Below the pieces are notes generated by a model, which was not told where the DNA came from, did not search any database, and saw nothing but the letters and a program-made list of their open reading frames with translations. A stretch of DNA of 64,000 nucleotides, taken from Blastocystis sp. Blastoise. Taxonomy: Eukaryota; Protista; Bigyra: Opalinata. Below, piece after piece: positions 11,101 through 58,423 of the stretch (the stretch's first letter is position 1; every line of letters starts with the position of its first letter). Location: positions 1,364,001-1,428,000 of the forward strand of contig JBBPEB010000015.1 of assembly GCA_039096225.1 (NCBI GenBank). The letters are read 5' to 3'. Position numbers and translations under genes: made by a program.

Positions 11101-14100
11101 AACACTCATATACAAATAAATAATCAAAGTAGAAGTCGAGTTTCTTCTTTTAATAGTGTATCTACATCAACTACACATCCTTCTATATCTGATTCTCCAA
11201 CTATATCCAAACAAGCATCAGTTACTGGTTATTCATCTAATCATAAATCGAATACAAATACAGCATTGTCCAATGATATTCATGTCACACCTTTAACAAC
11301 AACAATAAAGAATTCTTCATTTAAGTCTAAAATACCTACTCCACGAGGTCTTAAGCCACCTTCTACTTTTGGTAAATATCATAGTGCAATTCCTAAACCT
11401 GCTATATCTACTGAATCACAAAATAATAATAAATCTATGATACCTAGTCAGTCTCAGAATAATAATAAATCTACTATATCTACGGAATCACAGAATAATA
11501 ATAAATATACTATATCTACTAAAACCCAAAATAATAATAAATCTATGATACCTAGTCAATCTCAGAATAATAATAAATCTACAATATCAACTAAAGCCCA
11601 TAATAATAATAAACATATGATATCTAGTCAATCTCAGAATAATAGTAAATCCATAACATCTACTCAATATCATAGCAATACTACATCTAAGACATCTACT
11701 CAATCACGCTATAATAATAATAATAATAATAATAAGTCTTCAACATCTATACCTTCAACTCCCTCAAAGAATTCTATTCAAAAAGTAGTTGCTACTCCAA
11801 AGGCATCGATGACTACATCCAAAATAAATAAATCTAATGAAATTATGAATAATATTCCCGTTTCTTATGTTACTTCTGAAATAGTTTCATCTCCTACACA
11901 GTTAACTCAAGAGAATACATTATCTCAGAATACTATAGAATGTGATAATGATGTTGTTCTTGATAATAGTTGTTCAGATGTCAAAGATACTCAGGATTAT
12001 GTATCTCCATATATGAAGTCGTTGACTTCGAAGATTATTCATCAAGATAATATTATAGATGATGATGATAATGAATATGATACTAGTTATGAAAAAGGAG
12101 AAGATGAGTCAGTATATGAACTTCCTCATCTTCAGTCTACAGTTAAGAAACTTAGTCGATCCTCTTATCCTCTTATTGACAAAGATTATTATTCTATTCA
12201 AAAAAAGAATACATTTGAAGCCATATCTCCTAATGAGAATTCTCTATCAAATAATATCTTATCTTCAACAAATATGAATTCTATTCAAGATACATCACAG
12301 TCTATCTATACTTATAACAATACTAATCATACTCCTGATACTAGTTTTGAATCTATAGAAGAAGATGATTCCTTCTTAGAAGGAGTATCTATTCCAAACA
12401 ATAAGAAAAGTCAACCTATTATTCATCATCCCATGAATGATACATATATATCTCAACAAACACCTATATATGATGATGAGCCTCAACAACCTATGGATTC
12501 TTCTTTTGTTTATAATCAAATTTCTAAGATTAATAGTTTACAATATAATATGCCAGATATAAGTTCATTAACACAGAAAGTTATAAAATCCATAGATGTA
12601 CCTACTAATCCTGTATATGATGCTGTAATTGATGATGAAACCAATAGTGTCTCTTCTAATTCTCATGTCTCTACTTCTTTTATATCTCCTCTTCCTTCTA
12701 TATCAAGTCTCAACGATCATTCTACTCAATCTTTAAAGCCTATTATTCCTCTTGATAAAGAACATCAATTAATTCTTGATGATATTGTGAAACATCCTCG
12801 AGATAGTACTTATTTATTAAGTGAATTTGAAGAAGATTCAAAGAGTTTTCGTTCAACAGTAGATACACTCAAAGGTCAACGATATAGTCAGAGACCAAGT
12901 ATGGGTAGTGATTCAACGAAAGATCGAAAAAGTCTTTATTATGGTCGAGAAAGTACAAAAGATGTGAAGAATCGATTAATAACTAAAGGAAACGATAGTA
13001 AGAAGAAGTCTTATTGGGATAATAATGATGATATAATTCAATATAATCATGATAATACAGATCGAGTCATTTCTGCATTAAATCTCCCTATATCATTAAA
13101 ATATAATGAAGATATTATTGATAATTATTTAAAAGAAAAAGAACAAGATCCATTATTATTAACTGAACAAGATGAGAAGATCATGTTAGCTGAGAATTCA
13201 TCAAGTCAAGTAGAAGAATTATTATATGAACTTTCGATACAAATAGATCAGAATCAACAGAATCATGTAGTAATTAGTCAATTAGAGAATATTGTGAATA
13301 CTCAAGAAGATGGTATAGCTCAACTTGAAGAAATATTAATACGAATTGTAGAAGAAATGGAATCAGTTAAAAAGGAGAATATTATTCTCGAGAATAATTC
13401 AATATTGTTACAGAATAAATATAATGACTATAAGCAAAAGTCAGAAAGAGAAAATTCAATGTTGAGAAATCAATTTGATCAAGATAATCATCGTCTTATA
13501 ACTAAATATGAAGATAAATATGCATTATTAGAAACTCAAAAGAATACAGAGATTGAAAGACTTCAAGAGTATCTATTACAAATAGAAAATCAGAATGGAA
13601 TTACCTATACATTAAGTGACATTGATCGAGCTACATATGAAGATCAAATAATGGAATTACAGAAGACAAGTACTTTCCTAGAAAATGAATTAAATAATGC
13701 ATTTAATGAAATAAATAATTTAATTCAAAGGAATGAATCTCTTATTCATAAAGAAGAAAAGAATACGAAAGAAATCAAATCTTTACAAAACACTAAGATG
13801 GAGAATAATATATCTATTTCAAACTTAAAAACTCAACTATCTACTGTTATTAATTGTATAGTTATATTTTATTATATGTTATCATTATTATTTTTTTTTA
13901 TATTTATTATTATATGTTATTATTATTATATGTTATTATTATATGTTATTATTATATATTATTATTATTATATATTATTATTATTATATATTATTATTGT
14001 TATATATAGCTACTTGGGGTATATATGCATTAAATGAATATCATGATAAGATATTAGAATGTTCCAAGCAAATGACAGCTCTTAATTCTTATGCAGATGA

Positions 14101-14886: not shown

Positions 14887-16691
14887 TCAGAGTAAATTAT
14901 CAGTAATATTTGATGTTTTTGTTTGACTTGTTTTAGATTTTTCATTCGAGGTACTTCTTTCCGTAGATTTTCTATCAATAGATTTCTTTTTGTATATAGT
15001 AATAGAAGGTGATTGTTGAGGTAATCGTTGACTACTAACAAACGGTGATTGATAAGAATTACGCAAAACAGACGATGTACCTTGATGGAATAAAATATTT
15101 GATTTTCTTGTTGAAGAGAGTTGAGCTAATAGTTTTTGTACTCCAGGAGTTTGCATAGGAGTCCTGAATATATTATAGAATTACAGTAAAATATAGAAGC
15201 TATTATATTGATTTAATATACATATTAATTATTTATTATATCAAGATAATCATACAATAAATAGTTCCTCTTTAACTGTATAATATATATATATATACTT
15301 TGCTGTTATCTGTGGAGAAGGTAAAGGAGTATTTCCTGATTTTAGTTTACCTAGAGAACTTCCAGGAACACGTTTCATCTTTTCATAGAGTTTTTGAGCT
15401 AGTTCTTCTCGTTTATCTGGTGCTGAGAGACGTACTTCTCGTTCTTTCCACCATTCCTTCTTCTTCTCATCCTGATCTATCTTATTATCTAATATTTGAG
15501 GTGTACTTCCTATTTCTCCCCATTGAACCATAGGTGTATAACCTTCATTTATTACGGATGGAGTTGAGATATATGTATATTCAGTAGAGGTAGTCATAGG
15601 ATCCGTAGAAGATATAGATGTAGAAGGTTGAGAAGTAGAAAGACTATTTTGAATAGCTGTAGTCAATGGTGAATCAATTACACTTTTATCAATAGAAGTT
15701 TTAGTTTGTGTTGCTAGATGTTTAGAAGGATCCATATAAGGTATACAAGAGTCAATATCAACTGTATCTACGGATATAGAAGGGAATCGTGTATTCTGTG
15801 GACAGACTACAGGAGCCTTATAATTCTTTGGTTTCTTTGGTACTTTGGATTGATCTTCTAGGCGAGGTAATTGACAGATTTCACGGGAATCTTCTAGTTT
15901 TGGAGGGAACATAAATGCATTCATTGGATGAGAATTCTCTTGATCTTTAATTAACTAATAAATTATCATAATATAATACCATTTTCATAATAAACATATA
16001 TATAACCTTAGAAAAAAAATAAGAATATACATACTAGTTTTTCTTCATCACTAAGTAATAATGATGAATCATTTTTATTACCATATAACCACCATAATTT
16101 CTTTTTCATTTCTTCATTTTCTTTCTGTTGAAGATCTTGGAATGACTGGTTATCTTCACTAATTACCATATTTTCAAATCCACTCAATGATATATTCTTT
16201 GGTACTTTTACTTCATTGTTATCCACATCATGGAGAATGTAATAATCTGGATTATCATTCTCATTACCTTTTTCTAATGATGCCATTTCATCAGGATCTT
16301 CTTCTATTTTTGATAGAATAGATTTTAGTTCTTCTGCATAATCAAATTCTTTATTCTCTAATGCACGATAATACTATATATATATATATAAATGAAAAAA
16401 TAATTATTAAAGTGAATTACTTACATCAGCTTTCAATCGTAATACTTTCAAATGAGGAAAGTAATCTCTTTCGATCAATTTTCCAAATGTATCTAAATAA
16501 CTATCTTCATCTAATACTGCTTTTCGTTTTTTTGAAGGAGGTGGAGGTGGCATTGATGTAGTTTCATTTTTATCTGTAGTTCTTGATGGCATGATGTGAA
16601 ATAAAGTAGGATCCTCCATCATTTTTAATGTATTAGGAGAAGGCATAGGTAATTTTCTTTTATGATCATTCTTATCACTCTTCTCTTCCAT
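14887..16691 (-). CDS. ESS2: Splicing factor ESS-2/DGCR14 homolog (multi-exon)
   Basis: KKRKAVLDEDSYLDTFGKLIERDYFPHL, SLSGF...SEDNQSFQDL, NAFMFPP, NTRF, TPMVQWGEIGSTPQIL and REELAQKL match the Es2/DGCR14 family pattern in the expected order. Confidence 0.9.
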
Positions 16692-25583: not shown

Positions 25584-28973
<3,390 letters not shown>

Positions 28974-35123: not shown

Positions 35124-35313
35124 GTTTTCTTTATTAAAAATTTGTTTTGTTTATAAAAAAATGTTTTTAAAAATGTCGCAACTTTTGAACCACTCTACTG
35201 TTTATACATTTTTATCTGATGGATTAAAAAGAAATATTTCAGAGGATTACTTTTATTTTTAGATATACAAGAGTGTTTATGGTATTTAATTCATTTACAA
35301 GTACTAGGGTCAC

Positions 35314-35350
35314 GCCGCAGGTCCGGGGCCTAACGGCACCGGACCGCGGC
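35314..35350 (-). terminator. Helitron A 3' subterminal hairpin (rolling-circle termination signal)
   Basis: Minus strand GCCGC-GGTCCGGTGCC-GTTA-GGCCCCGGACC-T-GCGGC, followed by GTGACC-CTAG|T. Confidence 0.9.
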
Positions 35351-35532
35351 TGCAATGAATAATAAGTGTTTGGTTTTTATACAATTTCTTTCCTTATTAT
35401 CTATAATATATTATATATTATATATTATATATTATATATTATATAATATGTATTATTTATTAAATATTATCTATTAGATGTTACTTATTATATATAATAT
35501 ATTATATATATTATACATTATTTTAATAAAAC

Positions 35533-35602
35533 TTCTTATACTCTATATGGAGAGTAACAATCATTTATTGATTGTTATCAGGTTCAATTCCTGATATAAG
35601 AA
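35533..35602 (+). ncRNA. tRNA-like cloverleaf element, copy 1 (Helitron A 3' region)
   Basis: TTCTTATA/TATAAGAA closing stem; CTCT-ATATGG-AGAG arm; TAACAATC-ATTTATT-GATTGTTA arm; TCAGG-TTCAATT-CCTGA T-arm. Confidence 0.7.
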
Positions 35603-37109
35603 TTAAATAGATTATTTAAATAATATCTGAAAAACTAAAAACAAAAAAAAATATATAAATTCTTGTTTGATTCATTATATTTGTTATTTATTTTTTTTTA
35701 AATATATTTTGTATTTATAAATAGTTTAGTTACTTTTTTAATCATTATGGAATTTCTAAAGCTAATAAATCTCGAAATGGGTCACAATGTGAAGTATTGA
35801 AAAATATTTTTATTTTATTAAATTAATTTAAATAGATTAGAATAAAGTAGTTTAAACTATTTTTAACCATTTCATAAAACTAAAACAAATTTAACACAAC
35901 AATATCAACATTTATTTTCACATTAACGACTTAAACACATAGTTTTAGAATTAATATTAATGAAATCAATCTAAATAGAATTTTTATACATAACAGTATC
36001 AACAATATCGCTTTTAGAGAGACTTTACCATTTCGATATCCACTGTATCAAAATCGTTTTAGACATAACTTTCACACAGTATAGATCTCATTGTATTATT
36101 TATTAATTATAGTTTAATGTCTTGAATCTCTGACCTCATGACGCTTTTTAATACATTTTGAAAAATTGACACACTTATAGTTAATTTAAAACTCTAATAT
36201 TTAAACACTATACTCAACATAACTCTATCAATACATTAGTTACCATTTTAACACTCTTTATAAACATTTTACATTTGGTCATACACTTTTTCAAGAGTAT
36301 TTTTGTCACTTCTTTTAATATAATTTAGACTATAGTTCATAGTTTGATAAATAAAATGTTTTATATTGAATCTCGTCCGTTGAGTAACTTATTTCTACAT
36401 TTAAAAAAATAAACCCCTTTAAACTTGTTTTTAAAAGTCAAAATTTTCATAGTATAATAAAAACACAATTTTAAACAAAGAAGCTAACTCTTTAAAATTT
36501 CTAGACAACTCAAACACATTGTTAATTAACTTTTCAAAAATGAAATTCTCTTAATTTTTAATATGTTGTAGAATTTAGCTTAGTGTATATTAAATCATTT
36601 TTTAGAATTTCGAATCTCTTAGTTTAAGAACCCCTTTTTACAATTTTTTAAATTTTACAACCTTAAACTTACTTTTATGACTTTATATTTACACAATAAT
36701 ATATATATGCAAGATGAATTAGTGGAGAAAAACAAAACTTAAATATCTCAATCATTGACAGTATTAAATCAGTTATACTATATAAAGTTAAAAGTGGACA
36801 ATAGATATTTTAAATTAAATTGAATCCAAACATTTAAAAACTTGACACTATTTAATATATTAAGTAATTGAAGAATTATCTTAATAGTCGACACAATTTA
36901 AATAAAAAAAAAAAAAAGAAAAAGAACAAAACAAAAATAGAACAAAAAAAAAAATTTAAATATAAAATAGCTAAAAAGATAAAAAAAACATAAATAAAAA
37001 AATAATATAAAGAAAAAAAAATAATAAAAAACTATAAAAAATAAAAAATAATAATAATAATAAGAAAAAAAAAAAAAAAAAAAACTAAAAAAAAAAAAAA
37101 TCTAAACAT

Positions 37110-38459
37110 AACCATAACACTAAGAGAACCTATATAGATAAAAGATATATATATATATAATAAGAGATAGTATAATAAATATATCTAACATATATATATA
37201 TACCTTCAGTATTAAAAACTATTCACACCATCACTATATAGATATAAGATATAGATATATTAAAAGAAATATTATAAATATTTGTTATATATATATATAT
37301 ATATATATACCTTTAGATACATTTTTATTATTAAAATGAAAGCTAACATTAGGGTGATAAGATCCCCTATTAGAAAAGACACCTATATATAATATAATAA
37401 ATGATAAAATATATATAAACAATAAATATATATATATACCTTCTAAAGAAGGAACAGAGGAAACACCATGATATCTTAACTGACTTGAAGAACCTATATA
37501 TAATGAAAAGATAATTAATAAATCAAAAAAAAAAGAAAGGAAGAAATAAGAATATACCTGTATCATTATTACCATTAATCCAAGACTCCATAAGAAAAGA
37601 ACGACCTATATAAGATAAAAATAATAATAAACTAAATTAAATTTAAAAAGTAGACATACCTTCATCATTAATACGTTCAGCAACTACAACCACAACAGTA
37701 GAATAACCTATAAAGAAACAGTAATAGACAAATAATAAATAAAAAAAAAATAATAATAAATGAATGACAATATATATATACCTTTAATATCATATGAGCA
37801 GTCTACCTGATCACCAACAACATCCATAGCAACATTTACATCAATAAAACAAACCTATATATATAAAAGTAAAAAAAGAAAAATAAATGAATGACAACAT
37901 ACCTTCAACACCACACAGACATCTATTATCAACATCACTGTTAACATGTACAACAACTGAAGAACCTATATATATAGAAATAATAAAAAAATAATAATAA
38001 AATATAAAAAAAAAAAATAAATGATTGGTAACATACCATCTATAAAGCAAGAAGAACCTACATCAACACCGATATCACTATTGGAATCACTTACAATAAC
38101 AGAAGAACCTATATATAAAGAAAAGTTAAAAAAATAAAAACAAATCATTGACAACATACCTTCACAGTTAGCATAACAGGCAACACCACCACCTCTGTAT
38201 GATACAAATAACATAGAACAACCTAAAATAATATAATAAATAATTAATAAAAAAAGAAATGGAAAATATATACCTTTAAGACCATCAGAGCAAGTACCAC
38301 CAAGACTAAGAACATACATAACTGGATTCTATTGAGTAGAAGAACCTAAATATGAATACTAATAACAAATAGATACAATATACCTGATTTTCTTTGAAAT
38401 ATAAATTATTTTTTATTTCCAGACCTCCACCTTGAAGCAATTTTGTTGTTCTTAGACAT
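37110..38459 (-). pseudogene. Decayed micro-exon array (RepHel N-terminal region) in Helitron A
   Basis: Largely exon-by-exon homolog of 46130-47547 (MSKNNKIASRWRSGNKK vs MPKKTRMSSRRRSENRK). In-frame TAA at 38408-38406 and TAG at 38331-38329. No downstream RepHel exons. Confidence 0.8.
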
Positions 38460-38653
38460 CATAATTAATAATTTAATATATAAATGAGTATTAGATTATG
38501 TATTTAACAATCCTATTTCATTTGAATTAATAAATATAATAGGGTCTATTTTTAAAATATGCTTCTTAAAACATAATAGAAATCAAAAATAGCCTTAATT
38601 TTTCATTGATTTTATTACAAAAGTAATAATTGGGTCATTCTGGTTTAAAATCA

Positions 38654-38669
38654 TTTTGGGTACCCAAAA
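38654..38669. promoter_or_regulatory. Perfect 16-bp palindrome TTTTGGGTACCCAAAA in the putative bidirectional promoter of Helitron A
   Basis: Identical to 47740-47755 while the flanks diverge. Lies ~195 bp upstream of the minus-strand ATG, with two further GGGTC motifs nearby. Confidence 0.5.
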
Positions 38670-39234
38670 AACATAGTTCTTTACTCTTTTTTAAATATTT
38701 TATTGTATTGATTGACTTAGTGTGTTTTATTTATTTATTTAAAGTTATTTAACTTAGTATTATATTTATCTATTTATATACTAATTTATTTATTTAAAAT
38801 AATACACTTCTTTATAGGATTCTCTTGTATTTGCCTTGGTTGTCATGGTTAGTGGTTCTTGAAGTGGTCCTGGTTAAATGAAATGGTTTATTTAGTGTCA
38901 GGTATATAAATATATATATTTTTTATAATATTTCATTTTTAATTCATTTGTTTCTTTAATTGTTTCTTTTTTTATTATCTTTTTGGTTTATATTTTCTTT
39001 ATATATAATTAATCAATAGATTATTAGTTATTTTTATTCTATAGGGAAGAAAATGTAACTGATGTGTGTGTTATACTCTTCGTTTTTTCATGTCTTTCTT
39101 TTAAATCTGTGGTTTCAGGTTGATTTATATGTATATATTTATATTTTATTTATTATTTTTGTTATTTATTGTTTCTTTATTTATTTATATTTTATTTATT
39201 AAATTTATTTTATTTATTTATTTATTTATTTATT

Positions 39235-39277
<43 letters not shown>

Positions 39278-39292
39278 TTATACTAGGGTAAC

Positions 39293-39329
39293 GCCGCTGG
39301 CGCACCGCCTAACGGCGACGCGCCGCGGC
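39293..39329 (-). terminator. Helitron B 3' subterminal hairpin
   Basis: Minus strand GCCGC-GGCGCGTCGCC-GTTA-GGCGGTGCGCC-A-GCGGC, followed by GTTACC-CTAG|T. Confidence 0.9.
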
Positions 39330-39529
39330 TGCGTTGTTCAGTTGTGTTTTAAATTTTTTTATTAAACTTTATAGAACAAAACCATTTTTTTATTATAAAC
39401 ATTTTAAAAACAAATAAAAAGTGAAAAAGTAAAAAATTAAAAAGAACAAATATTTAACAAACATAAAACAAATAAAACAAAAGAAACAAAAGAAATAAAA
39501 GAAGAGAGGAGAAAAAAAAAATAAAGCAT

Positions 39530-42500
39530 TTAATTATTTAGAGTAGACCTGAAGACCACGTTCTTAGTAAATATTTCATTACTACTACTAATCATCTTAC
39601 CTTGAGAGACACTATCAACTACCTTAATAAAAAGAGAATTGAAAGATCGAGCACGACTGAAAGCAACATAGAGTTGACCATGAGAGAAGACAGGACGATC
39701 TAAATAAACACCAACTCTTTCAAATGTTTGTCCTTGAGATTTGTTAATAGTCATGGCAAAGGCTAAACGAATAGGAAATTGTCTTCTGGATATAATAATA
39801 GGAAGATCTTCAGGATTTGAATTACAGATGATTCTTGGAATAATAACAGTACGTTCATCAATAGTAAGAGAAGGAGGAGGATTTAAAATAGTAGCAGTAA
39901 TATTATTTGATCCTAATCGAGTTACTATAAGTCTAGTACCATTACATAATCCTTTAGAAGGATTAAGATTTCTTAAAAGCATAATGATACAACCTATTTT
40001 TAAATTTAATATATGAGGAGGCATTCCAGAAGGTGTTTGAGAATTGATAAACTCGATAGGATAATTTGATTCTGGATCATCTGTTTCAGAATCAAGAATA
40101 GAATCAGAAGAGATATAAGGAGTAGTAGTTCCAGAAAGAAGATTATCTACAATGAAATCATTTAAAGTACCAACACAATCATTAGTAGAAGCTAATATAA
40201 CAGAAGAAGCTAATCGTTTAATATCAGAATCAAGAGAAGTATTGATTCGATGTCCAAATACAGTAACACATAAATCATCATTTACAATACATTGAGGAGG
40301 AATAGGAATATAATCTATATCTAAATGATGACTAATAGTATAATTATTAGAAAGAACACCATCTCCTACTTGTAATAACCATTGTCTAAAATCATCTGCT
40401 CCTTCTAAAGCTCTCATATTTCTCGATAAATGAATAACATTATTTTTGATAGAATTCCATAATGAACAAAACTTTATAGAAGAACTAACAATCTGAGCTT
40501 GAGTTCCTTTTCTTATAACTGGTAAACATTGTCTGAAATCTCCTCCTAATACTACTGTTTTACCACCAAAAGGAATATCTAATTCTGTATTCATTATATC
40601 ACATAATAATCTATGTACTACCATAAAGCAATCACCTTTCATCATAGGAGCTTCATCCCATATTATTAAATCAGCTATTCTTATTTCTTCTACTTTTCTT
40701 CTATCTCTAGCTAAATCTATATTTGAAGTAGAATCAGGATCAACATTCAAAGGAATACCAAATTGTTTATGAGCTGTTCTACCACCTGGTAATAAAGTAG
40801 AAGCAATTCCTGTTGAAGCTACAGGTAATACATTCTTATTATGTCCACGTAAATAACTTAATAAACTATTATATAAGAAAGTCTTTCCACTTCCACCTGG
40901 ACCATCAATAAAGAAACATAACTTATCTTCTATTCTACTACTTTCTATTGAATGAATTACTCTATCAAATGCATTTCTTTGTTCTTCATTTAATAATTCT
41001 ATTACTCTATTAGCTTCTTGTAATTCTAAAGTAGGATTATAATTATAATCATTATAATGATGTTGTTCTTCTACTTGAGGTAATCCTAAATCATTATAAT
41101 TCACTCCTATACTTATCATCATCTCTTTTATATCTTGTAAAGTACGTATTTCATAATCTTGAAGAACACTATTAGTATCATCTTCTATAACACTTGATGA
41201 ATCTAAATCTTGAGCTAAAGGAGTATTTATATAATCTATTTCATTATTATGCATTGAATGTTTATAATCTTCACTAAGAAATGATTTAAATCGAATCCAA
41301 AACTCTTTTACATTTGTTAATAATGATTCTGAAATATAAGTAATAAATAATTGTCTCAATTGACATGGAGTAGCAAAAACAATAGCTTCTGAAAATGAAT
41401 CAAATACTTCTCTTTCATTATTCAATAATCCTCTTGCTATAGCTGCTTCACTAAAGGTTCTATAAGGTTCATTACTATTCAATCCTTTTACTATCTTCAA
41501 AGAATCAAAACTATCAGCTCCTTTCGTATTCAATAATAATAATCTTAAAGCATATCGTTCTTTATCTTTTGGATTCACATAATACATTCTTCCTAAAGCT
41601 TTTATATCTCTCTGACGTCTATTCCAAGTATTTGTATTTGATTTCCATACATAATATTTTGGTATTTCATGATAAGCATAAATAGGATATTTCTCATCTA
41701 ATATTTTCAATAATTCTTCTGATATATTATCATCATCTACTTCATAACTATTTATTCTATTTATCTCTTCTAAACGAACTTGAATCAATTCTCTTTCTTC
41801 TTCTACACTATTCATATTACGAATACCATGCTTCTTCTCTATATAATAATAAGTATATATCTTTCTTTGATTCTGAACTTCTTTCTCTAAATCAAAGTAT
41901 TTTGTTAATTTAGTACCTTTCTCTAAACTATTTCTTAATGCTTCTTCTTCATGTCCTTCTCGAAATAATATATATGGATCATCAGGTAAATGAATAGGTA
42001 ATCTATTAATAGAAACAGAATTATAAGTAATTTCAAAACAATTCAAACGATAAGAAGCTTCAGGAGGAGAAACATATCGACAATCTAAATAAGCTTGAGT
42101 TTCATCTACTATTCCATTATCATTCACTCTTCTTAATTGAGCTATCACAGAATCATTTCCTTTTAATGCATATTTATATATATATTTAGTACTTTGAATA
42201 TTACAACAGACTTCTACATTAATATGAGCTTGATATTTCAATAATAAATAAGGATTATAAGGAACTACCCAACGATTATCAATGGTATAAGTATTGTGAC
42301 TACGAATAAGAGTAATAGTTCTATCAGGAATATTTCTTCTTTGATATAAAGGATAAGAATTTAAATGACAATTAGTTTGCTCTATATATTCTTTTGGAAA
42401 TCTCTTACTACATTTACCTGTTGATCTATCAATACAAACACAATTCGTATCATAATCAGGACCACATGGACCATGAATCATATGTTTCTTAACTAATTCA

Positions 42501-44538
42501 TAAAGAAGAGGAGTTGATTCTTTATCAGGAATCTCTGCACTTATTATACTATCTACTTCATCTTCTGTTCTATATTTAGAATTCGTATCTAAAATAATTA
42601 ATATATGAGAATGTGGTAAACCTCTCTTTTGGAATTCTACTGAATATAATAAAGCTTCTACAGTACCAAATATATTCTTATCCTTTATATCAGAAAGCAA
42701 TTGTTTCAACTTTAAATGAAACACTCTTGAAACTAAATCTGGAAATTCATTAACAGTATAACCTTCTGGAATATTATTCTTTATTTCTAGCCAATCTGGA
42801 TTGCAAGTAAATGTAATAAATAAATCAGGTTTACCATATTCTCGAACTACACTCATAGCATCCATATATTTCTGTTGTAAATTTCTTGGACTACCAACAA
42901 AAGAAGAAGGTAATATAATAGCTTTGCCTATTCTATCTATATTTCTATCATTCTCATTTATTTGATCTCCTCTCTCTTCTAACATATTATTTATATTCTG
43001 ATAAGTTGAAGCTCTTAATTTATTTTGATTATTTCGTATATAATTAATTCTATTTTGTTCTACTCGTATATAATTATCAGTAATATATTGTAAAGTTAAT
43101 TTCTTATATTTTAATAAATAATTATCATAAGGTGGATCTTTCATTTGAAGCATATAATTATAATATTCTAACATCGTAATAGTTATTTGATTAGAACGAT
43201 TCAATGATAATAAATCTGGATACCAACCTTGTCTTCCAGTTGGAAACATAACTGGATAAACCATACAATCTATATATGAATTTGTATTCTTCATTACTAT
43301 ATATTGACCTGAAGTATAACGATTCTGTTCATTATTACTATTAGTAGCTACTATTTCCATACCACTTCTAGGAAAACAACAATAACTTCTTTCTGGCATT
43401 ACTCCTCCTTCTCTATATTGATATATTACTGCTACTTCATCTACTTGAGGAGTATTATATCTTCTTATATCAGGTACTTCTCTTCTTTGTTTCTTAAATT
43501 CTATTAATAAATTAATATTACTTCTATTCATTTGACTATTCTCTTCTATTACTTCATCTACTCTTTCTCGAAGTGAATTATATATTTGAGCTAATGGATG
43601 ATATTCTCTTATTGTACTATCTAATATTTGTAAAATATTTGGTTTTAAATCACAAAAATATCGATTCATACTTCTCATATGAGTAGCTTCATCTCCATCT
43701 ATCATATAATATTGATTGAATACAGGATGTCTTGTAGGATCATTCACATCAAAATCTAAAGCACTCTTAAAAGTATGATATATATTACCTCCACATTTAA
43801 ATAGTAATGGTCCAGAAGAATTTCTTAAATCATCATCAGAAGTATTATTTCCAGCTAAAGAAGCTAAAGCAACAGAATTATTATATCGAATTATATTATT
43901 AATAAATTCTCTTGAATCTGGATTATCTCTTTGTAATAAAGAACGAATAGTATTAGGAAGATCAGGAAGTTCAGGAAGAACTACTTTACCACTACCACAG
44001 CAAGTATAAAACTTATCATTCATTCCTTTCTCTAATTCAAAATGTTTAGCATGACAATATTCACAATGAACATTAAAATCACCTAAATAATTAGCTTTAT
44101 AAGTATTCAATGCTTCATTTAATACGAAATCACCATGAGAATCTATATAAAATAATATAAAATAAATATTAAATATATATAAATACTTCTTTGAATAGAA
44201 GCAATACAATTATGTAATCCAGGATATAATAATCTTTGTTGATTATCTATAAAAATAATTTATTATTTAATTATTCATAAAGAATTATAGAATATAAATA
44301 TCATACAAATATCTAAAGCTCTTCTTCTTCCTCTATTAATAATAGGATGAATAGTTATGTCTTCTTCAACTATAAAAAAAGTATTAAATAAATATATTTA
44401 AATAATAAAAAACATACTATTATCTGTTATAGGTCTTCTAATAGTTCTTACAACTGGTATTTCATCATTATTTTGAGTATTACTATTAATATTAGGAAAA
44501 GGATCAATATAATCAGAATCAGAATCATTATCAGAAAA

Positions 44539-44575
<37 letters not shown>

Positions 44576-47547
44576 TCACTTGAACTACTACTACTACTAC
44601 TACTATTAGGTATTGTTGTTATAATTTCTGATTCATTATCATTATTTAAATTAATATGAGGAATATTTGTCAGAATACTTAAAGGAGGAAGAATAGGACT
44701 TAAATCAGGAATAGTTAAATAACTATTCATAATGGAATTAATAGATCTATTATTTCTTTGTATTATTGTTTCATTATTATTAGTATTAATGTTATTTATA
44801 GAATGATTCGTATTATCATTAATGATTGCAGAATTATTATTGTTAGATATACTTACATTAGTTGGAATAGTAGTAACAACAGGTAAAGAGTGTGAAGAAG
44901 CATTAATAGAATCATTATTATTATTAGAAACTGAAATATTATTTTCTGTAGGTTGTATAATAGTAGTTGATATAGGAATAGATTGATTATTATTATTTAT
45001 TGGACTTTGAACAATAGATATGTTATTGATTGATTGATTTATTGGATTCATTTGATTGAATAAGTTTGAACCATTATTTAATATAGAATTATTATTATTT
45101 ATTTGTGAATAATTATTATCTATATCAATATCAATATTGTTATTTGAAATATTGTTTTGAATGTTTTGTAAAGGAATATTATTTTGTATATTAAAAGTCG
45201 AAAACAAAGCTAAAGGTTTTGAGTTAAAACCAAATGATTTAGATAAATCATTATTATTTATTTTATCCTTATTGGAACCTATATATATTAATAGTTAGAT
45301 ATTAATTATAATTTATGGTAAAGTTAATGATATGATAAGTCTTTTATTAAGTGTATTAAGTCTCATTATAGTTAATGAAGTAATTACTAATTAATATAAA
45401 TATATCATAGAGTATCTATGAAATATTTATCAATCCATAAAGTAAACACTTTATTAATTAATAATTATCTTCAATATTAAACATAATGAAAGATAATATT
45501 ATAATTAATGAAAACTAATATTAAATAAGTATAGATATTTAATATTGTATTATTTATTAAACAATCCTTAAGATCCGCTCATAACGGACTTCTATAACTA
45601 TTGTGCTTTGTTACAACATATCTAAAACATATCACTAACTACCCAGTTTATATCTATGTACAATGCGAGTAAGTGGAGAAACTCAACACTTAATAAGAGC
45701 TCAAGCATCGATAGTATATAACATCGGTTAGGCTATATCGAATTAGAGGCGAACAATAGTCAACAATAGTATGAGTCACACAGGCGATCAATAGATGTTT
45801 TAAATATAATTTAATACAAATATTTAAAGACTCCACACTATTCAATATTAAGTAATTCAAGAATTATCTTAATAGTCGACAACCTTACCATTTTTTTTCG
45901 ACACAATATAAATTAAATAAATCAATTTTAACAAAACAAAAAGAAAACAAAAGAAAGTATTCTATTAAATATTAACATACTAAGTAGCACAGCTAAACGA
46001 AGTAGTTAAATAAATAAATAGACACTATAAGAAAGCAGATAATAGAAAGCTATTATCTGTGAAAAGAAAATAATAACAAAATAATAATAAGCAAAAGAAA
46101 AGAAAACTAAAAGATTATTTTTAACATACCCATCACATTATTAGTACCTATAGAGACAAAAGACATAGATATATATATAATAAGAGAAGTATATAATAAA
46201 TATATGTAATATATATATACCTTCAGCAATTAAAGAATTATCAATACTAACATCTATAGAGACAAAAGACATAGATATATATATAATAAGAGATATTATA
46301 ATAAATATATGTAATATATATATACCCTTAGTCATTGAAGAACTATTATCATCAACACCTATAGAGACAAAAGACATAGATATAATATATTAAAAGAAAT
46401 ATATAATAAATATATGTAATATATATATACCTTCAGCAACTGAAGAATCACTCACACTAACACCTATAGAGACAAAAGACATAGATATATATATTTAAAA
46501 TAAGATAAAATAAATATATGTAATATATATATACCTTTAGATATAGTTATATTTGTAACATCAGCACCAACAGGATGATATTCTCTCACATTAGAAGACA
46601 CACCTGTATATTATCAATGAAAGAGATAATAATAATAATATATATTTATATAAATAATAAATACATATATATATACCTTCTAAAGAAGAAGCTGAAGAAA
46701 AGCCAGGTCTTAACTGAGTTAAAGAACCTATATATAAATAAAAGAGTAATAAATTAAAAATAAATTAAAAAAGAAGAAAAGAATAAATATCTATATACCT
46801 TTAGCATCACTACCATTAATAGAAGGACCTATATATATTTATAAAATAAAATAAAGAAAGTCAAATAGGAGACAAATGAAATAGAGCATACATACCTTCA
46901 TTATTAAAAGAATCAGCAACAGCACTCATAGCAACAGAAGAGCCTATAAAGAAATAGTAATAGGTAATAAAAATAAAAAAAATAAAATAAGTGAATGTCA
47001 ACGTACCTTCAAGACCATTAGAAGAGTTAACATCACCATCAATAGCAACAACAACGGCATTCACAACAACAGAAGAACCTATATATATAAACATAAGTAA
47101 AAAAAGAAAACAAATGAATGATAACATACCTTCAAGACCATTAGAAGAGTTAACATCACCATCAACAGCTCCAGAAACAGAGTCCACAACAACAGAAGAA
47201 CCTATAGACAAATAAAAGTTAAAAAGAAAGACAAATGATTAGCAACATACCTTCACATTCATAAGAACAGGCAACAACACCATCACGATGTGATTCAAAG
47301 GACACAAAAGAACCTAAGATAATATAAAATAATAAAACAAAAAGAAATGTATAAATATATACCTTCAAGACCATATTGATAAGCACCATCACCATCAATG
47401 ACATCCATACTTGTATCCTGTTGAGTAGAAGAACCTATATATGAATAATAATAAAGAATGGTATAACATACTTGACCGTCTTTGAGAAATATAGCTTTTC
47501 CTATTTTCAGACCTCCGCCTGGACGACATCCGAGTCTTCTTAGGCAT
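39530..47547 (-). CDS. Helitron RepHel transposase (HUH Rep + Pif1-family SF1 helicase); 17-exon model, 2088 aa
   Basis: Exons 47547-47472, 47434-47363, 47313-47251, 47201-47130, 47078-47007, 46943-46896, 46828-46799, 46727-46677, 46603-46535, 46463-46431, 46358-46326, 46253-46221, 46147-46130, 45278-44418, 44369-44307, 44246-44187, 44142-39530, all GT-AG and in frame. Motifs CEYC..CCGSG, GKPDLFITFTCNPDW, EFQKRGLPHSH, KYIYKY, GPGGSGKT, WDEAPM, GDFRQ, TINKSQGQT, FSHGQLYVAFSR. The RepHel call is near certain; joining of the 5' exons is inferred. Confidence 0.9.
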
Positions 47548-47739
47548 CCTATTTAATAACTAATTATAAAATAAGTATTTTTATGAAGAAAACAAAATCT
47601 TATTTTGATTTCAATTTTTGTAAAATAGGGTCAACATTTAAAATATGTATCTTTAAAAATATAATGAATCATAATTAACCTTGAATTTTTATTAATTTTA
47701 TTGCTAAACTGATAATTGGGTCATTTTTTGTTAAAAACA

Positions 47740-47755
47740 TTTTGGGTACCCAAAA
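47740..47755. promoter_or_regulatory. Perfect 16-bp palindrome TTTTGGGTACCCAAAA in the putative bidirectional promoter of Helitron B
   Basis: Lies between the RepHel ATG (47547, minus) and the plus-strand exon at 47903. Conserved with 38654-38669. Confidence 0.5.
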
Positions 47756-48374
47756 ACTATAGTTTTTTACATTTTTTAATTATTTGATTATATTGATTGT
47801 CTGTATATGTTTTATTAATTAATTTGATATTGTTTAGTTATTATTTTTATATTTATATATATATATATATTTATTTATTTAAAATAATACACTTTTCTAT
47901 AGGATTCTTTTGTATTTGTCTTGGTTGTGGTGATAGAAGCTTCTTGAAGTGGTCCTGGTTGTGCTACATGGCTTATTTATTGTCAGGTATATAAGTATAT
48001 ATATTTTTTATAATATTTTCTTTTTCATTTGTCCATTCATCTGTTTTACTTATTATTTTATTTATGTATTTTATTTATTTTTTCTTTATATATAATTTAT
48101 TCAATATATTGCTAATTATTTTTATTCTATAGGAAGAAAATGTTGTTAATGTGTTGTGGTTTTCGTTTTTTTATGTCTTTCTTTTTTAATCTGTGGTTCC
48201 AGATTAATTTATAGGTATATATTTATATTTTATTTATTATTTTTATTATTTATATGTTTATTTATTTATTTATTTATTTATTATATTTATTTATTATATT
48301 TATTCATTTATTTTATTTTATTTATTAATTTTATATTATTTATTTATTTATTTATATGTTTTTATTGTATATAG

Positions 48375-48797
48375 GTTTAATAGTCTTCTTATTCTTTCTT
48401 TCTTCTTCCTTCTTCATTTTACTTCTTCCTTATTCTTCTTTCTTCTTCCTACTTCTTCCTGCTTCATCATTCATCATTCTTCCTGCTTCCTTCTTTCTTC
48501 TTCCTCCTTCTTCTTTCTTCCTACTTCATTCTTCTTCACCTTGATTCTTCATTCTTCCTCATCCTTCTTTCTTCTTCCTACTTCTTCCTGCTTCATCATT
48601 CATCATTCTTCCTGCTTCCTTCTTTCTTCTTCCTCCTTCTTCTTTCTTCCTTCTTCCTTATCCCTGATTCTTCCTTCTTCCTTATCCTTGATTCTTCCTT
48701 CTTCCTTCTTCTTCATCCTTAATTCTTCCTTCTTCTTCTTCATACTTCCTTATTCCTCATCCTTCCTACTTCTTTCTTCCTCTTCATTTCCTTCTTA
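48375..48797. repeat. Pyrimidine-rich (CTT/CTTC) low-complexity tract of Helitron B; homolog in A at ~50492-50880
   Basis: About 400 bp, strongly C/T-dominated on the plus strand, directly upstream of the tRNA-like element in both elements. Confidence 0.85.
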
Positions 48798-48844
48798 TTA
48801 TATATATATATATATTTAATTATTATTATTACTCTTTAAACTCC

Positions 48845-48911
48845 CTTTATGCTCTAGAAGGAGAGAAGCAATCATTATAGATTGTTTTCAGGTTCAATTC
48901 CTGACATGAAG
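48845..48911 (+). ncRNA. tRNA-like cloverleaf element, copy 2 (Helitron B)
   Basis: CTTTATG/CATGAAG stem; CTCT-AGAAGG-AGAG; AAGCAATC-ATTATA-GATTGTTT; TCAGG-TTCAATT-CCTGA; T-runs just downstream. Confidence 0.7.
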
Positions 48912-50930
48912 TCTTATTTTTCTTTTTTTAAATATTTTATTTATATATTATTATATATATATATTCTCTTTTTTTAATTTATTTTAATCCAGTTTAATTT
49001 ATACTTTTCAATTTTGACCTTATATATATATATCTAACTTTTTATAGTTTTTTTAGACTTACTCTTCTCAACAACAGTCACAATGAGAACAAATCCATTT
49101 TAACTGAAACAACTAAGTAATCTCAAAACTGTTTGAATCAATCAGTATAGACGTGTATGACATAATTTATGTATTTAAACTCAATTTTAATAATTAAAAG
49201 TAAACAAACCAAACATACATGTTGACTTTAAAACTTTAAACTCAGTGTTAAATGGTTAGTTTTAAAGAGTAGACACAAAACATTGATTTATACTAAAAGG
49301 AATGAAAACAATCAACTCTTGATACAACTTTACCATTTGATAAAACACTCATCCACAATATTTTTCAAAGTTCTTTTAGTAAAGTGTTTATATAGACATA
49401 TAATGTATAAAATGAAAGTCAACTTCTTGAATCTCTTATTTTAGGACAGTCTTTAAAACATTTTGACAAATAGAGAACATTTAACTTGTTATTTAAAGCT
49501 AATATTTTAAGAGTAGACTTGACTTGGATGAATATAAACAACAGCCAACACTTTAAACATTTTAAGACATACTTTACATTTTGCCGATACACTTTGACCT
49601 TCATAATTTTGACTCTCCTTTTAATATAGTATAGAGTTATAAGTCTAGTTTATTAAATAAAACTTATTATATTGAATCTCTCACTCTAAGACCACTTAAT
49701 TCACACTTTTCAAAATTGTGACACTCAAACTCGTTATTTTAAGACTTTGTTTTAACTATAGTAGTTTGATGACCTATTGATTACTATGATACAATATTAG
49801 TCGATTATAAGAAGATCGAAGAAAATATGGATCACTCAATAATCGTCCTCAGGAGCTCAAAATTGGTACACCTAGGTTTTTCGACCTCCTGAATCAGAAT
49901 ATCATGTCAAATTAAGAATCTAAATTTGACCGTTAAGGTCTCACGTGTTCAATATGAAAAAGTATTAAAAAATAGATAAATATAAAGAATAAACACGGAT
50001 AACGTATATTGTGGGATTGAGAAAAAATCAAGTTTACCCCATGTTTATTTTTCAATTGTCTGGTCAACAATTTTTATCGGGATGATCCCAAAGAGCCAAT
50101 CAAAAACGACTCAAAAATCATATTTTCTGTTTTTTTATTAATAACTTTTTAATTATAAATAATATCGCTTAACCAAATATATGTTGCAAAACTACACGTT
50201 ATATCGTATTGAACTGTGTTTCAACCAAAAGTTAACTCCCCGTAAGTTTAGAGGAGTTGAGGCTACAAACTATAGTATATAGTAGCCAATCAAATGCATT
50301 TTCCAAAAACTGACCAATGGGAATTTTTTTGCCTATTCTCATATATATAGTAATGATTTATTATATTTATATGTTTATTTATTTATTATTATTTATTTAT
50401 TTTATATGTTTATTTATTTATTTTTAATATTTATTTATGTATTTATTAATTATTTATATTATCTTTTTTATATGTTTTCTATTTTATATAGGTTTAAAAT
50501 CTTCTTATTCTTTTTTTTCTTCTTTCTTCTTCCTTCTTACTTCTTTCTCATTCTTTCTACTTCCTATTTCCTTCTTCATTCCTTCTTCCTTCTTCCTATT
50601 TCCTTCTCCATTCATGCTTCCTTCTTCCTATTTCATTCTTCATTCATGCTTCCTACTTCCTACTTCCTACTTCCTTCTTCCTTCTTCCTCATCTTTGATT
50701 CTTCTTACTTACTTCTTCTTCATTCTGGATTCTTCCTTCTTCCTCATCCTTCCTTATTCTTACTTCTTCTTACTTCCTTCTTTCTCATCCTTCTTCCTCA
50801 TCCTTCCTTATTCTTACTTCTTCTTCCTAATCCTTCCTACTTCCTTCTTCCTCATCCTTCCACTTCATTTCCTTCTTATTATATATATATAAATATATAT
50901 ATTTGATTATTATTATTATTTATAAACTCC

Positions 50931-50996
50931 TTTTATGCTCTAGAAGGAGAGAAACAATCATATAGATTGTTTTCAGGTTCAATTCCTGACATAAAG
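50931..50996 (+). ncRNA. tRNA-like cloverleaf element, copy 3 (Helitron A 5' region)
   Basis: TTTTATG/CATAAAG stem; CTCT-AGAAGG-AGAG; AAACAATC-ATATA-GATTGTTT; TCAGG-TTCAATT-CCTGA; T-runs just downstream. Confidence 0.7.
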
Positions 50997-51029
50997 TGTT
51001 ATTTTTTTATTTTTTAATATTTTATTCAC

Positions 51030-51084
<55 letters not shown>

Positions 51085-51429
51085 TCTTTTTTAAATTTAT
51101 TTTAAACCATTTTAATTTATACTTTTCAATTTTGATCTTAAACATATATATCTAACTTTTTATAGCTTTTTTAGACTTCCTCTTCTTAACAACAGTCACA
51201 ATGAGAACAAATCTATTTATACTCAAACAAATAAATTATCTCTAAACTGTTTGAATCAATCAATATAGACGTGTCTGACATAATTTATCAATTTAAACTC
51301 AATTTTAATAATTAAAAGTAAACAAACCAAACACACATGTCGACTTTAAAACGTTAAACTCAGTATTAATAATTTATTTTTATAGAGTAAACACGAAACA
51401 TTGATTTATACAAAAAGGAATGGAAACAA

Positions 51430-52340
51430 TCAACTCTTGATACAACTTTACCATTTGGCAAAACACTCATCCACAATATTTTCTAAAGTACTTTTCATAA
51501 AGTGTTTATATACACATGCTATCTATAAAATGAAAGTCAACTTCTTGAATCTCTTTGTTTAAGACACTACTTAATACATTTTGACAAATAGACAACCTTT
51601 AACTTATTATATAAAGCTAATATTTTAAAATTAAACTTGATTTAGACCTATGAACACATTAGTCAACACTTTAGACTTTTTAAAGACACTTTACCATTTG
51701 GTCATACACTTTGATCAAAATATTTTTGTCCCTCCTTTTAATATAATATAGGTTATACACTCTAGTTTAATGACTAAAAGCTCTTATTTTGAATCTCGTC
51801 CTCTAAGTCACTCATTTTTACATTTTCTAAAAATTAAGACCCTTAGAGTTGATTTTTTAAGTTAATTTTTCTACAGTGTTCCAAAAACACGATTTTGCTC
51901 AAACTGAAGTAAAAATAAATTTTAAATAATAGTCACAACACCTCACACATCCATTCTTTAAAAATTATTTTAACTGTACTTTTGATATGTTGTAGAGCTA
52001 CTATAGCTGTACACTAATTAATATCTCTAAATTTTTTATTCATAGTTTAAGACTATGTTTTACACATTCTTTTTAAATTTGACAACCTTAAACTATTTAT
52101 TTAAAGCTCTTATTCATAAAATAGACTTGATACATGATTCTAAACACATATATAAACCCTTTTACTTTTTAAGACACATTTTGTCATTTGGTCATACACT
52201 TTGACCTTCATAATTTTGACTCTCCTTTTAATATAGAATAGAGTTATAAGTCTAGTTTACTAAATAAAAGTCATAATATTGAATCTCTCACTCTAAGACC
52301 ACTTAATTCACATTTTTTCAAAATTGTCACTTTTAAACTC
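51430..52340. repeat. Degenerate ~245-bp tandem repeat array; homologous arrays at ~36010-36700 and ~49310-49740
   Basis: TTGAATCTC anchors at 36122/36366/(36610), 49427/49672 and 51545/51789/52279. The ACTTTACCATTTGG..ATACAC anchor shows the same spacing. Confidence 0.7.
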
Positions 52341-53762
52341 GTTATTTTAAAACTCTGTTTTAACTATAGTAGTTTGATGACCTATTGATTACTATGCTAC
52401 AATATTAGTCCATTATAAGAAGATCGAAGAAAATATCGATCACTCAAAAATCGTCCTCAGGAGCTCAAAATCGCTACACCTAGGTTTTTGGACCTCCTGA
52501 ATCAGAATATCATGTCAAATTGAGAATCTAAATTTGACCGTTAAGGCCTCACGTGTTCAATATGAAAAAGTATTAAAAAATAGATAAATATAAAGAATAA
52601 ACACGGATAACGTATATTGTGGGATTGAGAAAAAATCAAGTTTACCCCATGTTTATTTTTCAATTGTCTGGTCAACAATTTTTATCGGGGTCACCCCAAA
52701 GAGCCAATCAAAAACGACTCAAAAATCATGTTTTCTGTTTTTTTATTAATAACTTTTTAATTATAAACAATATCGCTTATCCAAATATACGGTGCAAAAC
52801 TACACGTTATATCGTATTGAACTGTGTTTCAACCAAAAGTTAACTCCCCGTAAGTTTAGAGGAGTTGCGGCGACAAACTATAGTATATAGTAGCCAATCA
52901 AATGGTTTTTCCAAAAACTGACCAATGGGAATTTTTTTGCCTATTTGCTTTATAATAGTAATGATTGTGTCACTCTATAGTATTTTTAAGATTATTAATA
53001 CAATAATTCAAGAGTATATATAAATTCCTGTAAGTTTATTCTTGAAAAGTTTAACGATAATTGATGCAATATTAAATGAATATAAATGATATTTTATGCT
53101 ATATTATATTTATATATGTTCTTATTGTGGAAATTGAATAATTTGATTACAATTACTATTAATAATTATTTAAAGAATATTATATTATGTAAAATTAAAA
53201 AATGAAATATCATACTTGGTAAATATACAAATATTCACGTATAAGCCAAGAAAAAAAAAGAATTAATTAGAGTATTAGGTAGCTTTTATGTAATTCTGAG
53301 AAATAAAGGATTTCATTGATCTCAAATGAACTCATATGCATCAATCTTGTTCAAATAAGTTTTTTAGAACATGAATGTGTTCATAAGATAAATAATTTAT
53401 TCTTCTATTACTGTAATTTTTCATCTATGTATTCTATCTTTTTAATTATATGATGTGGTTTAATTAATTTCTTTATCTAATGCTTACACGTTGTAAAATA
53501 AGATAAGTAAAAAAATAGAAATTATTATGAAATTTGCGGTATATTATTAGGAATAATTCTGAAAGAATATAAATACTTCTGTTCACGTTGGGTTATTTGA
53601 AAAATTGAAATGTCTTGTTTTCCATAGTTATTATATATAACAAAAAAATTGGTTTAAAACGTAATGGATCCGATGTGTTTCCAAAGGGCGATTTAGAAAA
53701 AGAAAAAGTTCTCTTTTTTGCTCTTCTCTGCATTGTTTCTATTACTTTCTTTTCGTAATACA

Positions 53763-58339: not shown

Positions 58340-58423
58340 GCCAGTTTGTCCGAGTGGTCTAAGGAGGGGGACTCAAGATCCTTTATGTGAAAGCATGCGT
58401 GGGTTCGAACCCCACAGCTGGCA
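58340..58423 (+). tRNA. tRNA-Leu(CAA), intronless
   Basis: Acceptor GCCAGTT/AGCTGGC plus A73; D-arm TGTCCGAGTGGTCTAAGGAG; anticodon loop CT-CAA-GA; long variable arm; GTGGG-TTCGAAC-CCCAC; T-run terminator follows. Confidence 0.95.

Follow-up and report, generated by a model that had tools for sequence, protein, structure and literature searches.

An array of symmetric mini-exons ahead of the transposase core in a predicted Helitron gene of Blastocystis sp. "Blastoise"

Canonical Helitrons have 5'-TC and 3'-CTAG ends, a subterminal hairpin and an insertion point between A and T, encode a protein with Rep (HUH) and Pif1 helicase domains (RepHel), and are accompanied by nonautonomous derivatives with common ends and by nested or chimeric copies. 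Intron-containing RepHel genes have been described in plants and in Caenorhabditis elegans, according to the part of PMC8788227 in which Kapitonov and Jurka (2001) is cited. Here, we describe a Helitron, referred to as Helitron A, from a window of 64,000 nucleotides with a G+C content of about 25% from Blastocystis sp. "Blastoise". This organism is the strain Rus-B, which was obtained from a Russian tortoise, and the paper describing its genome does not mention Helitrons (PMC10690189). Helitron A shares all of the canonical features listed above, but differs in that its predicted RepHel gene contains 16 introns, all of which are in phase 1, and in that the 5' part of the gene is an array of 10 to 12 duplicated symmetric mini-exons, the number of which varies by copy. 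In the literature, we found no description of a symmetric mini-exon array on a Helitron transposase, and no link between Helitrons and micro-exons apart from a review of transposable elements in schistosomes. With 17 exons, phase-1 introns throughout and a variable mini-exon array before a conserved core, the gene would represent an undescribed transposase architecture for Helitrons. The array-bearing family has so far been seen only in the tortoise strain Rus-B.

The preliminary description of the locus compared the array with the micro-exon genes (MEGs) of schistosomes, in which the coding sequence consists mostly of very small symmetric exons, all products carry a signal peptide, and exon skipping has been shown experimentally (PMC4350168). 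The 2 systems have in common the runs of small symmetric exons, a fast evolution with a ratio of nonsynonymous to synonymous substitution rates (dN/dS) of about 1 or higher, products that are disordered (in our case most likely so), and an expansion driven by duplication. However, we found the likeness to be superficial. The array accounts for 594 of the 6,267 coding nucleotides (about 9.5%), and 7 of its 12 exons are 48 to 72 nt long. Only 5 are 36 nt or shorter, so that "mini-exons" is a more accurate label than "micro-exons", although the exons are indeed small and symmetric. Furthermore, the product is a transposase with a basic N-terminus that looks nuclear-targeted, the first exon encodes neither a hydrophobic core nor a signal peptide as read directly from the sequence, and there is no homology to the MEGs. 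Skipping has been demonstrated in schistosomes, whereas here it is only frame-compatible in a predicted gene.

Symmetric 1-1 exons obey the classical exon-shuffling rules. As in other cases of tandem exon duplication, which affect repetitive or disordered parts of proteins, each exon encodes one peptide repeat, the introns were duplicated together with the exons and have the same phase, and the copy number changes by unequal recombination. Neighboring units of the array were alike, including their introns, and all were of phase 1-1. What differs is the location of the array inside a mobile element, because of which a single genome harbors different array "alleles" that can recombine via nested insertions.

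We think it probable that the array truly belongs to the coding sequence of the RepHel gene, at its 5' end, and that it forms an in-frame disordered spacer that arose by tandem exon duplication. The gene would start with a basic exon resembling a nuclear localization signal (NLS), followed by 12 mini-exons that grew by tandem duplication of exon-plus-intron units. The array would thereby provide an acidic spacer of about 198 residues, rich in S, V, G, and D, ahead of an Asn-rich region and the Rep/helicase core. The symmetry of the units, all of which are flanked by phase-1 introns, allows elements to gain, lose, or swap them while the frame stays intact. The individual residues would be unconstrained, and the frame would be kept only since a stop codon or frameshift would abolish the downstream transposase. 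If so, the array offers a natural example of a disordered protein region that grows by duplication of exon units.

Helitron A and the exons of its transposase gene

Helitron A is an autonomous element of 11,074 bp on the minus strand (50356-39283), with its 5' end TCATTACTAT.. at 50356 and its 3' end ..CCCTAG at 39283. The terminal 5' TC and 3' CTAG, the latter of which fits the CTRR consensus, were common to at least 10 copies elsewhere with different flanks. At the 3' end (39329-39283, minus strand), a G+C-rich 16-bp hairpin (39329-39293; -20.1 kcal/mol) is located 10 nt from the terminus, and the CTAG occupies 39286-39283. An empty site was identified by megablast at position 18939 of L005, where the sequence ..ATAATAAA|TATAATAAAT.. 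is uninterrupted, with A|T at the joint (L-numbers refer to paralogous loci, and P-numbers to public GenBank protein models). The segments 35287-39282 and 50356-52969 of the window matched L005 with 99.2% and 99.6% identity, respectively, and since both flanks adjoin in L005, the 11,074 bp that separate them in the window (39283-50356) represent an insertion. It was placed between an A and a T of the host sequence within an (AAAT)n tract, and all copies in the terminus comparison had an A on the 5' flank and a T on the 3' flank.

The RepHel open reading frame (ORF; 39530-44209, minus strand) matched the Pfam families Helitron_like_N (2e-56), PIF1 (2e-64), and Pif1_2B (3e-19), and the motifs ..LPHSHILI.. 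and ..KYIYKYALKG.. were read directly in its translation. The closest database protein was P0001, a hypothetical protein of 2,079 residues from Blastocystis sp. "Blastoise". By its termini, hairpin, insertion between A and T without a target-site duplication, and RepHel protein, element A is a canonical Helitron. The earlier proposal that the array resides in a mobile element was thus borne out by a fully delimited element with an empty site; the array is located 2.8 kb inside Helitron A and is a family feature of the 5' region. The family has apparently been active recently in this gut protist. The clear ends and the empty site are an aid to annotation, and several "hypothetical proteins" in GenBank are pieces of this Helitron.

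Helitron A is nested inside a nonautonomous Helitron, here called Helitron B (52964-35304, minus strand), which measures 6,587 bp without A, has its 5' TC at 52964 and its hairpin and CTAG at 35304, and contains no RepHel gene. It carries a decayed paralogous array (38462-37130, minus strand) with stop codons in exons 1 and 2 and one frameshifted exon of 73 nt. The array of B was 67% to 72% identical to that of A, and an intact B-type array exists elsewhere in the genome (P0139). The presence of a second array after the CTAG of Helitron A prompted us to consider head-to-tail tandem Helitrons, which were ruled out by megablast and by the empty site. The (AAAT)n tract of the B 5' region (39282/39283 and 50356/50357) was found to be occupied also in L002, where another copy ends with CTAG|TAAATAAATAAA at the corresponding place in a second copy (position 9089). 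This microsatellite looks like a recurrent Helitron target, and recurrent targeting of the tract would result in apparent head-to-tail tandems.

The transposase gene of Helitron A is encoded on the minus strand, as are all exons given below, and contains 17 exons and 16 introns. Strand reading and mechanical parsing reproduced all coordinates and lengths previously given for exon 1 and the 12 array exons, as well as their GT-AG flanks, their lengths in multiples of 3, and the absence of stop codons. The downstream exons were placed by alignment to an annotated paralog, and this mapping reproduced phase 1 for all 16 introns, including the one that ends at the 45278 acceptor. The residue with the split codon is Gly in 10 of the 12 array exons, in line with the split Gly codon reported for nearly all of them, Ser in exon 2 and Asp in exon 12.

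Exon 1 (47547-47472, 76 nt) encodes MPKKTRMSSRRRSENRKSYISQRRS and ends in phase 1. Its NLS-like peptide is basic, with K or R at 10 of 25 residues, including the motif KKTR, and the basic character is kept in the paralogs. Each of the 12 mini-exons that follow is bordered by ..AG and GTA.., has an open frame and is of phase 1-1, and the array introns are 37 to 73 nt long with uniform, strong GTAT..TAG sites. Mini-exon 2 (47434-47363, 72 nt) is the best-conserved unit in the array, whereas mini-exon 3 (47313-47251, 63 nt) matched the B type at 46 of 63 positions versus 36 of 63 for the type represented by L001. Mini-exon 5 (47078-47007, 72 nt) is a tandem duplicate of the unit of mini-exon 4 (47201-47130, 72 nt), with a period of 123 nt and 78% similarity. 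These are followed by mini-exon 6 (46943-46896, 48 nt), by mini-exon 7 (46828-46799), which has 30 nt here and 72 nt in other copies owing to an in-frame indel of 42 nt, by mini-exon 8 (46727-46677, 51 nt), and by mini-exon 9 (46603-46535), with 69 nt here and 72 nt in other copies. Mini-exons 10 (46463-46431), 11 (46358-46326), and 12 (46253-46221), each of 33 nt, stem together with their introns (46463-46221) from a 105-nt exon-plus-intron unit that was recently triplicated in tandem, with 85% to 91% similarity between units. The array is closed by mini-exon 13 (46147-46130, 18 nt).

Downstream of a long phase-1 intron (46129-45279, 851 nt), the gene continues with an Asn/Ser-rich low-complexity exon of 861 nt (45278-44418), in which the first in-frame ATG is located at 45054, 2 symmetric phase-1 exons of 63 nt (44369-44307) and 60 nt (44246-44187), and a last exon of 4,613 nt (44142-39530) that encodes the RepHel core with the Helitron_like_N, PIF1 helicase, and Pif1 2B domains. 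All 4 downstream exons are open, have GT-AG borders, and are entered in phase 1.

The array product amounts to 198 residues (S 21%, V 15%, G 11%, and D 9%), in agreement with the module of about 200 S/V/G/D-rich residues described previously, and contains 29 acidic and 6 basic residues. AlphaFold, to which the preliminary description had pointed for the structure of this module, predicted no fold and gave a mean predicted local distance difference test (pLDDT) score of 28, a value that came from an alignment of 7 sequences and is weak evidence of disorder. The array is most likely intrinsically disordered.

An explanation that we regard as extremely improbable is that the array is an artefact, in which an unspliced minisatellite merely resembles a series of exons. 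Tandem Repeats Finder did report repeats in the region, with 3.7 copies of a 105-nt unit at 86% and 2.3 copies of a 123-nt unit at 82%, and the Rus-B genome contains much low-complexity DNA (PMC10690189). However, the G+C content contrasts sharply between the array exons (39%) and the introns (13%), indels in the exons were exclusively in-frame, the GT-AG borders were kept at each unit across copies, the frame was open at 22% divergence, and the annotation of the genome was guided by RNA sequencing (RNA-seq) data. The G+C contrast, the recurrence of the architecture in 5 or more further copies in the genome, the open frame, and the indel sizes exceed what is expected by chance.

Predicted junction between the array and the RepHel core

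Public protein models joined an array of this kind to RepHel in 5 paralogous copies (P0001, P0122, P0123, P0125, and P0131), each with 10 mini-exons, consistent with the previous claim that the array is in frame with RepHel. The 4 full-length paralog models that were mapped contained 15 exons of 76, 72, 63, 72, 72, 48, 72, 51, 72, 60, 18, about 846, 63, 60, and 4,613 nt, separated by 14 introns, all of which were in phase 1 and one of which was long, at about 1,430 nt. In P0001, the first exon was 58 nt rather than 76 nt, the model starting at a downstream ATG. GT-AG was kept at every unit in all copies compared. The Rus-B genome was annotated with Braker3, StringTie, and Mikado, with the scoring tuned toward introns supported by RNA-seq data (PMC10690189). 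The junctions between the array and RepHel are probable because the pipeline favored such introns, and from the public models of the paralogs we infer that the array is spliced to RepHel also in the window copy.

It has to be considered whether the array could instead be a separate passenger gene for a protein of about 200 to 230 residues, with RepHel starting within the long intron or downstream of it and the joined models representing fusions made by the predictor. We judge this to be unlikely. Stand-alone array models are available (P0135 with 226 amino acids, P0136, P0137, P0138, and P0139), as are array-free RepHel models (P0124, P0127, P0129, and P0132 to P0134). The long intron, with 851 to 1,430 nt, is atypical for the gene, the identity between copies falls abruptly at about 45400, and the in-frame ATG at 45054 would permit translation of RepHel by itself. 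However, the examined models that separate the array from RepHel came from copies that were either interrupted (L007 and L008) or decayed (L009 and L010). The long intron is a recurrent target of nested Helitrons, with independent insertions of nonautonomous elements at 12305-18663 in L007 and at 7296-10052 in L008. The insertion in L008 is located 9 nt upstream of the acceptor, and the models P0132 to P0134 begin within the 3' hairpin of the inserted element (MQPRSGAVR..). L009 and L010 contained a premature stop in exon 1, and RepHel homology was absent after the array. Uninterrupted mapped copies, on the other hand, had array and RepHel joined in the public models, and the frame of the array has been kept although its sequence is unconstrained, but decays in copy B, which has no RepHel. 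An alternative terminal exon after the last mini-exon (acceptor near 46054, giving a short C-terminus) was also considered and rejected; the one public stand-alone model, P0135, uses another donor and another acceptor.

The element at L006 (6200-16951) has the same termini and a RepHel core with about 97% to 100% identity, but an unrelated 5' region of 4.8 kb. Its protein, P0127, starts with a basic first exon, after which there is no mini-exon array. This array-free RepHel implies that the array is not indispensable.

The preliminary description further noted that any subset of the array exons can be skipped without a frameshift, and saw in this a combinatorially variable N-terminal module, as in schistosome MEGs. 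The first part agrees with the lengths and phases of the exons, all of which are multiples of 3 in phase 1, and there was no stop codon at any junction that could be created by skipping array exons; the dN/dS of the array is also high, as in MEGs. Yet the use of many skip combinations seems quite improbable. The public models contained no skipped isoform, and all exons were kept in the 5 full arrays. The shorter array proteins P0137 and P0138 were examined as candidate exon-skipped forms, but they do not represent skipped transcripts because the exons in question are absent from the DNA at their loci, in which exon 1 also contains a stop codon. Introns of 37 to 73 nt are normally spliced by intron definition, a mode in which exons are rarely skipped and which is favored by both the size of the array introns and their uniform, strong GTAT..TAG sites. 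Nor does the product, with its basic exon 1, appear to be secreted. We infer that splicing of the array is constitutive rather than combinatorial and that the array serves as a spacer. Exon skipping, if true, would provide a transposon with a novel means of varying its transposase.

A comparison of exon numbers across copies did reveal differences, with 12 array units in the window copy, 10 in the L001 type, and fewer in L009 and L010; where the window copy has the three 33-nt units, the L001 type has a single exon of 60 nt. The source of this copy-to-copy variation is in the DNA, by duplication or deletion of units and mosaic recombination between element subtypes.

Divergence of the array and of the RepHel core

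The dN/dS values between copies ranged from 0.03 to 0.08 for the RepHel exon, which points to strong purifying selection on the core. For the array, the values in the same 6 copy pairs ranged from 0.8 to 2.2 and were not significantly above 1 (p 0.07-0.84); the comparison across copies thus gave high values for the array, but they were indistinguishable from neutral. At the same time, the array of the window copy contained no stop codon despite a divergence of 22%, for which the probability in neutral simulations was 0.01 to 0.03. The indels measured 42 and 3 nt in the array exons and 3, 1, 1, 7, 2, 1, and 19 nt in the introns. The frame was lost in copy B, which has no RepHel. An open frame combined with unconstrained residues is expected where translation must pass through the array to reach the transposase.

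Several points weigh against the array being an unconstrained in-frame spacer. Aside from the shallow alignment behind the pLDDT value and the in-frame ATG at 45054, the splice across the 851-nt intron is predicted for the window copy from the paralog models. Both mini-exon 2 and a repeat motif of 24 residues (GSS..V..D.V..A.DGD.NS..GLE) were conserved, and some of the array may therefore serve a specific function. Furthermore, dN/dS was 1.2 to 2.2 in 4 of the 6 pairs, and among close copies the exons diverged faster than the introns (Fisher p 0.002-0.02). Together, these 2 observations could reflect diversifying selection rather than neutrality.

Such selection would be in keeping with a functional hypervariable domain, shaped by diversifying selection and gene conversion between subtypes, for instance to escape a host inhibitor or to alter tethering. 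The patchwork of L001-type and B-type segments in the window copy and the presence of several array "alleles" on near-identical RepHel cores also speak for this explanation, which we nonetheless find rather improbable. The dN/dS values were not significantly above 1, and in comparisons of the window copy with the others the introns had diverged as much as the exons. The contrast in G+C content between exons and introns (39% vs 13%) in an AT-biased genome offers an alternative account of the faster change in the exons. Finally, no fold was predicted, and a RepHel subtype without the array exists. A more far-reaching version, which we hold to be very unlikely, is that the array forms a cassette-like N-terminal domain that is actively diversified by skipping, unit turnover, and gene conversion between nested elements, giving many transposase variants per genome. 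If true, such a domain could serve to escape host inhibitors or to vary target or chromatin tethering, and would make this transposase the first in eukaryotes with a programmed variability module.

The array of the window copy is a patchwork, in which some segments most resembled the L001 type while others, among them exon 3, were nearer to the B type. The 5' module as a whole (about 48850-45350, roughly 1.5 to 5 kb from the 5' end of the element) was 73% to 87% identical to other copies, against 97% to 100% for the RepHel module (39283-45400), and dS for the window copy was about 0.16 in the array and about 0.05 in RepHel. The shift in identity near 45400 is located within the long intron, itself a hot spot for nested insertions, and the break fits an exchange of modules between elements. 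This suggests that modules have been exchanged between Helitron subtypes, and nested Helitron insertions can shuffle modules among elements.

A mosaic structure with a breakpoint in an insertion-prone intron is likewise seen in Helitron capture and chimeras, but no relative of the array was identified among host genes, and the exchange here seems to have occurred between Helitron subtypes. For the homology searches, the window exons were translated and searched singly, and the longer N-terminal queries were parts of public paralog proteins. Neither the paralog N-termini nor the individual window exons matched a Pfam family. A word search of 5.8 billion sequences gave no homologs of the array outside this genome, and a profile search of 1.84 billion proteins gave only proteins from the same genome and 2 low-complexity matches. 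Metagenome scans yielded 0 matches to the conserved exon-2 pattern and 0 matches to the 5'-end motif. All array homologs with examined surroundings, a set that does not include the P0139 locus, were located in the 5' region of this Helitron family. An origin of the array by capture of a host gene is therefore unsupported, no non-Helitron homolog having been found among the annotated proteins and the examined loci.

Other features of the window

A block at 47737-47755, about 190 nt upstream of the start codon, contains the palindrome GGGTACCC (TTTTTGGGTACCCAAAATG) and has been kept in Helitrons A and B despite diverged surroundings; it may be a promoter element. The Helitron 5' region also includes a purine-rich microsatellite of about 430 nt (48384-48810; GAA/GGA-type), which accounts for the strong G/C skew of that part of the window. 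A tRNA-like stretch near 48900 was rejected, as ARAGORN found no tRNA there. Compared with the window copy, the 5' region of the copy at L003 has an insertion of about 2 kb, in which a gene for a DDE_1 (pogo-like) transposase (7631-9013) is nested.

Outside this genome, the best matches to RepHel were Helitron proteins from animals (a pseudoscorpion, a lizard, and insects) with 35% to 43% identity, and there was no stramenopile protein among the 120 matches listed for the RepHel ORF. The animal-like matches could reflect sampling or horizontal transfer.

Elsewhere in the window, an uninterrupted ORF of 1,791 residues (8662-14037, plus strand) had no Pfam match and is located in a region with a strong negative GC skew (-0.4). 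The ordinary host features that flank the elements, at 316-3598, 15250-15924, 26664-27467, and 58340-58423, comprised 2 ORFs with He_PIG Ig-like domains, an Es2-like ORF, a GH31 glycosidase fragment, and a tRNA-Leu(CAA).

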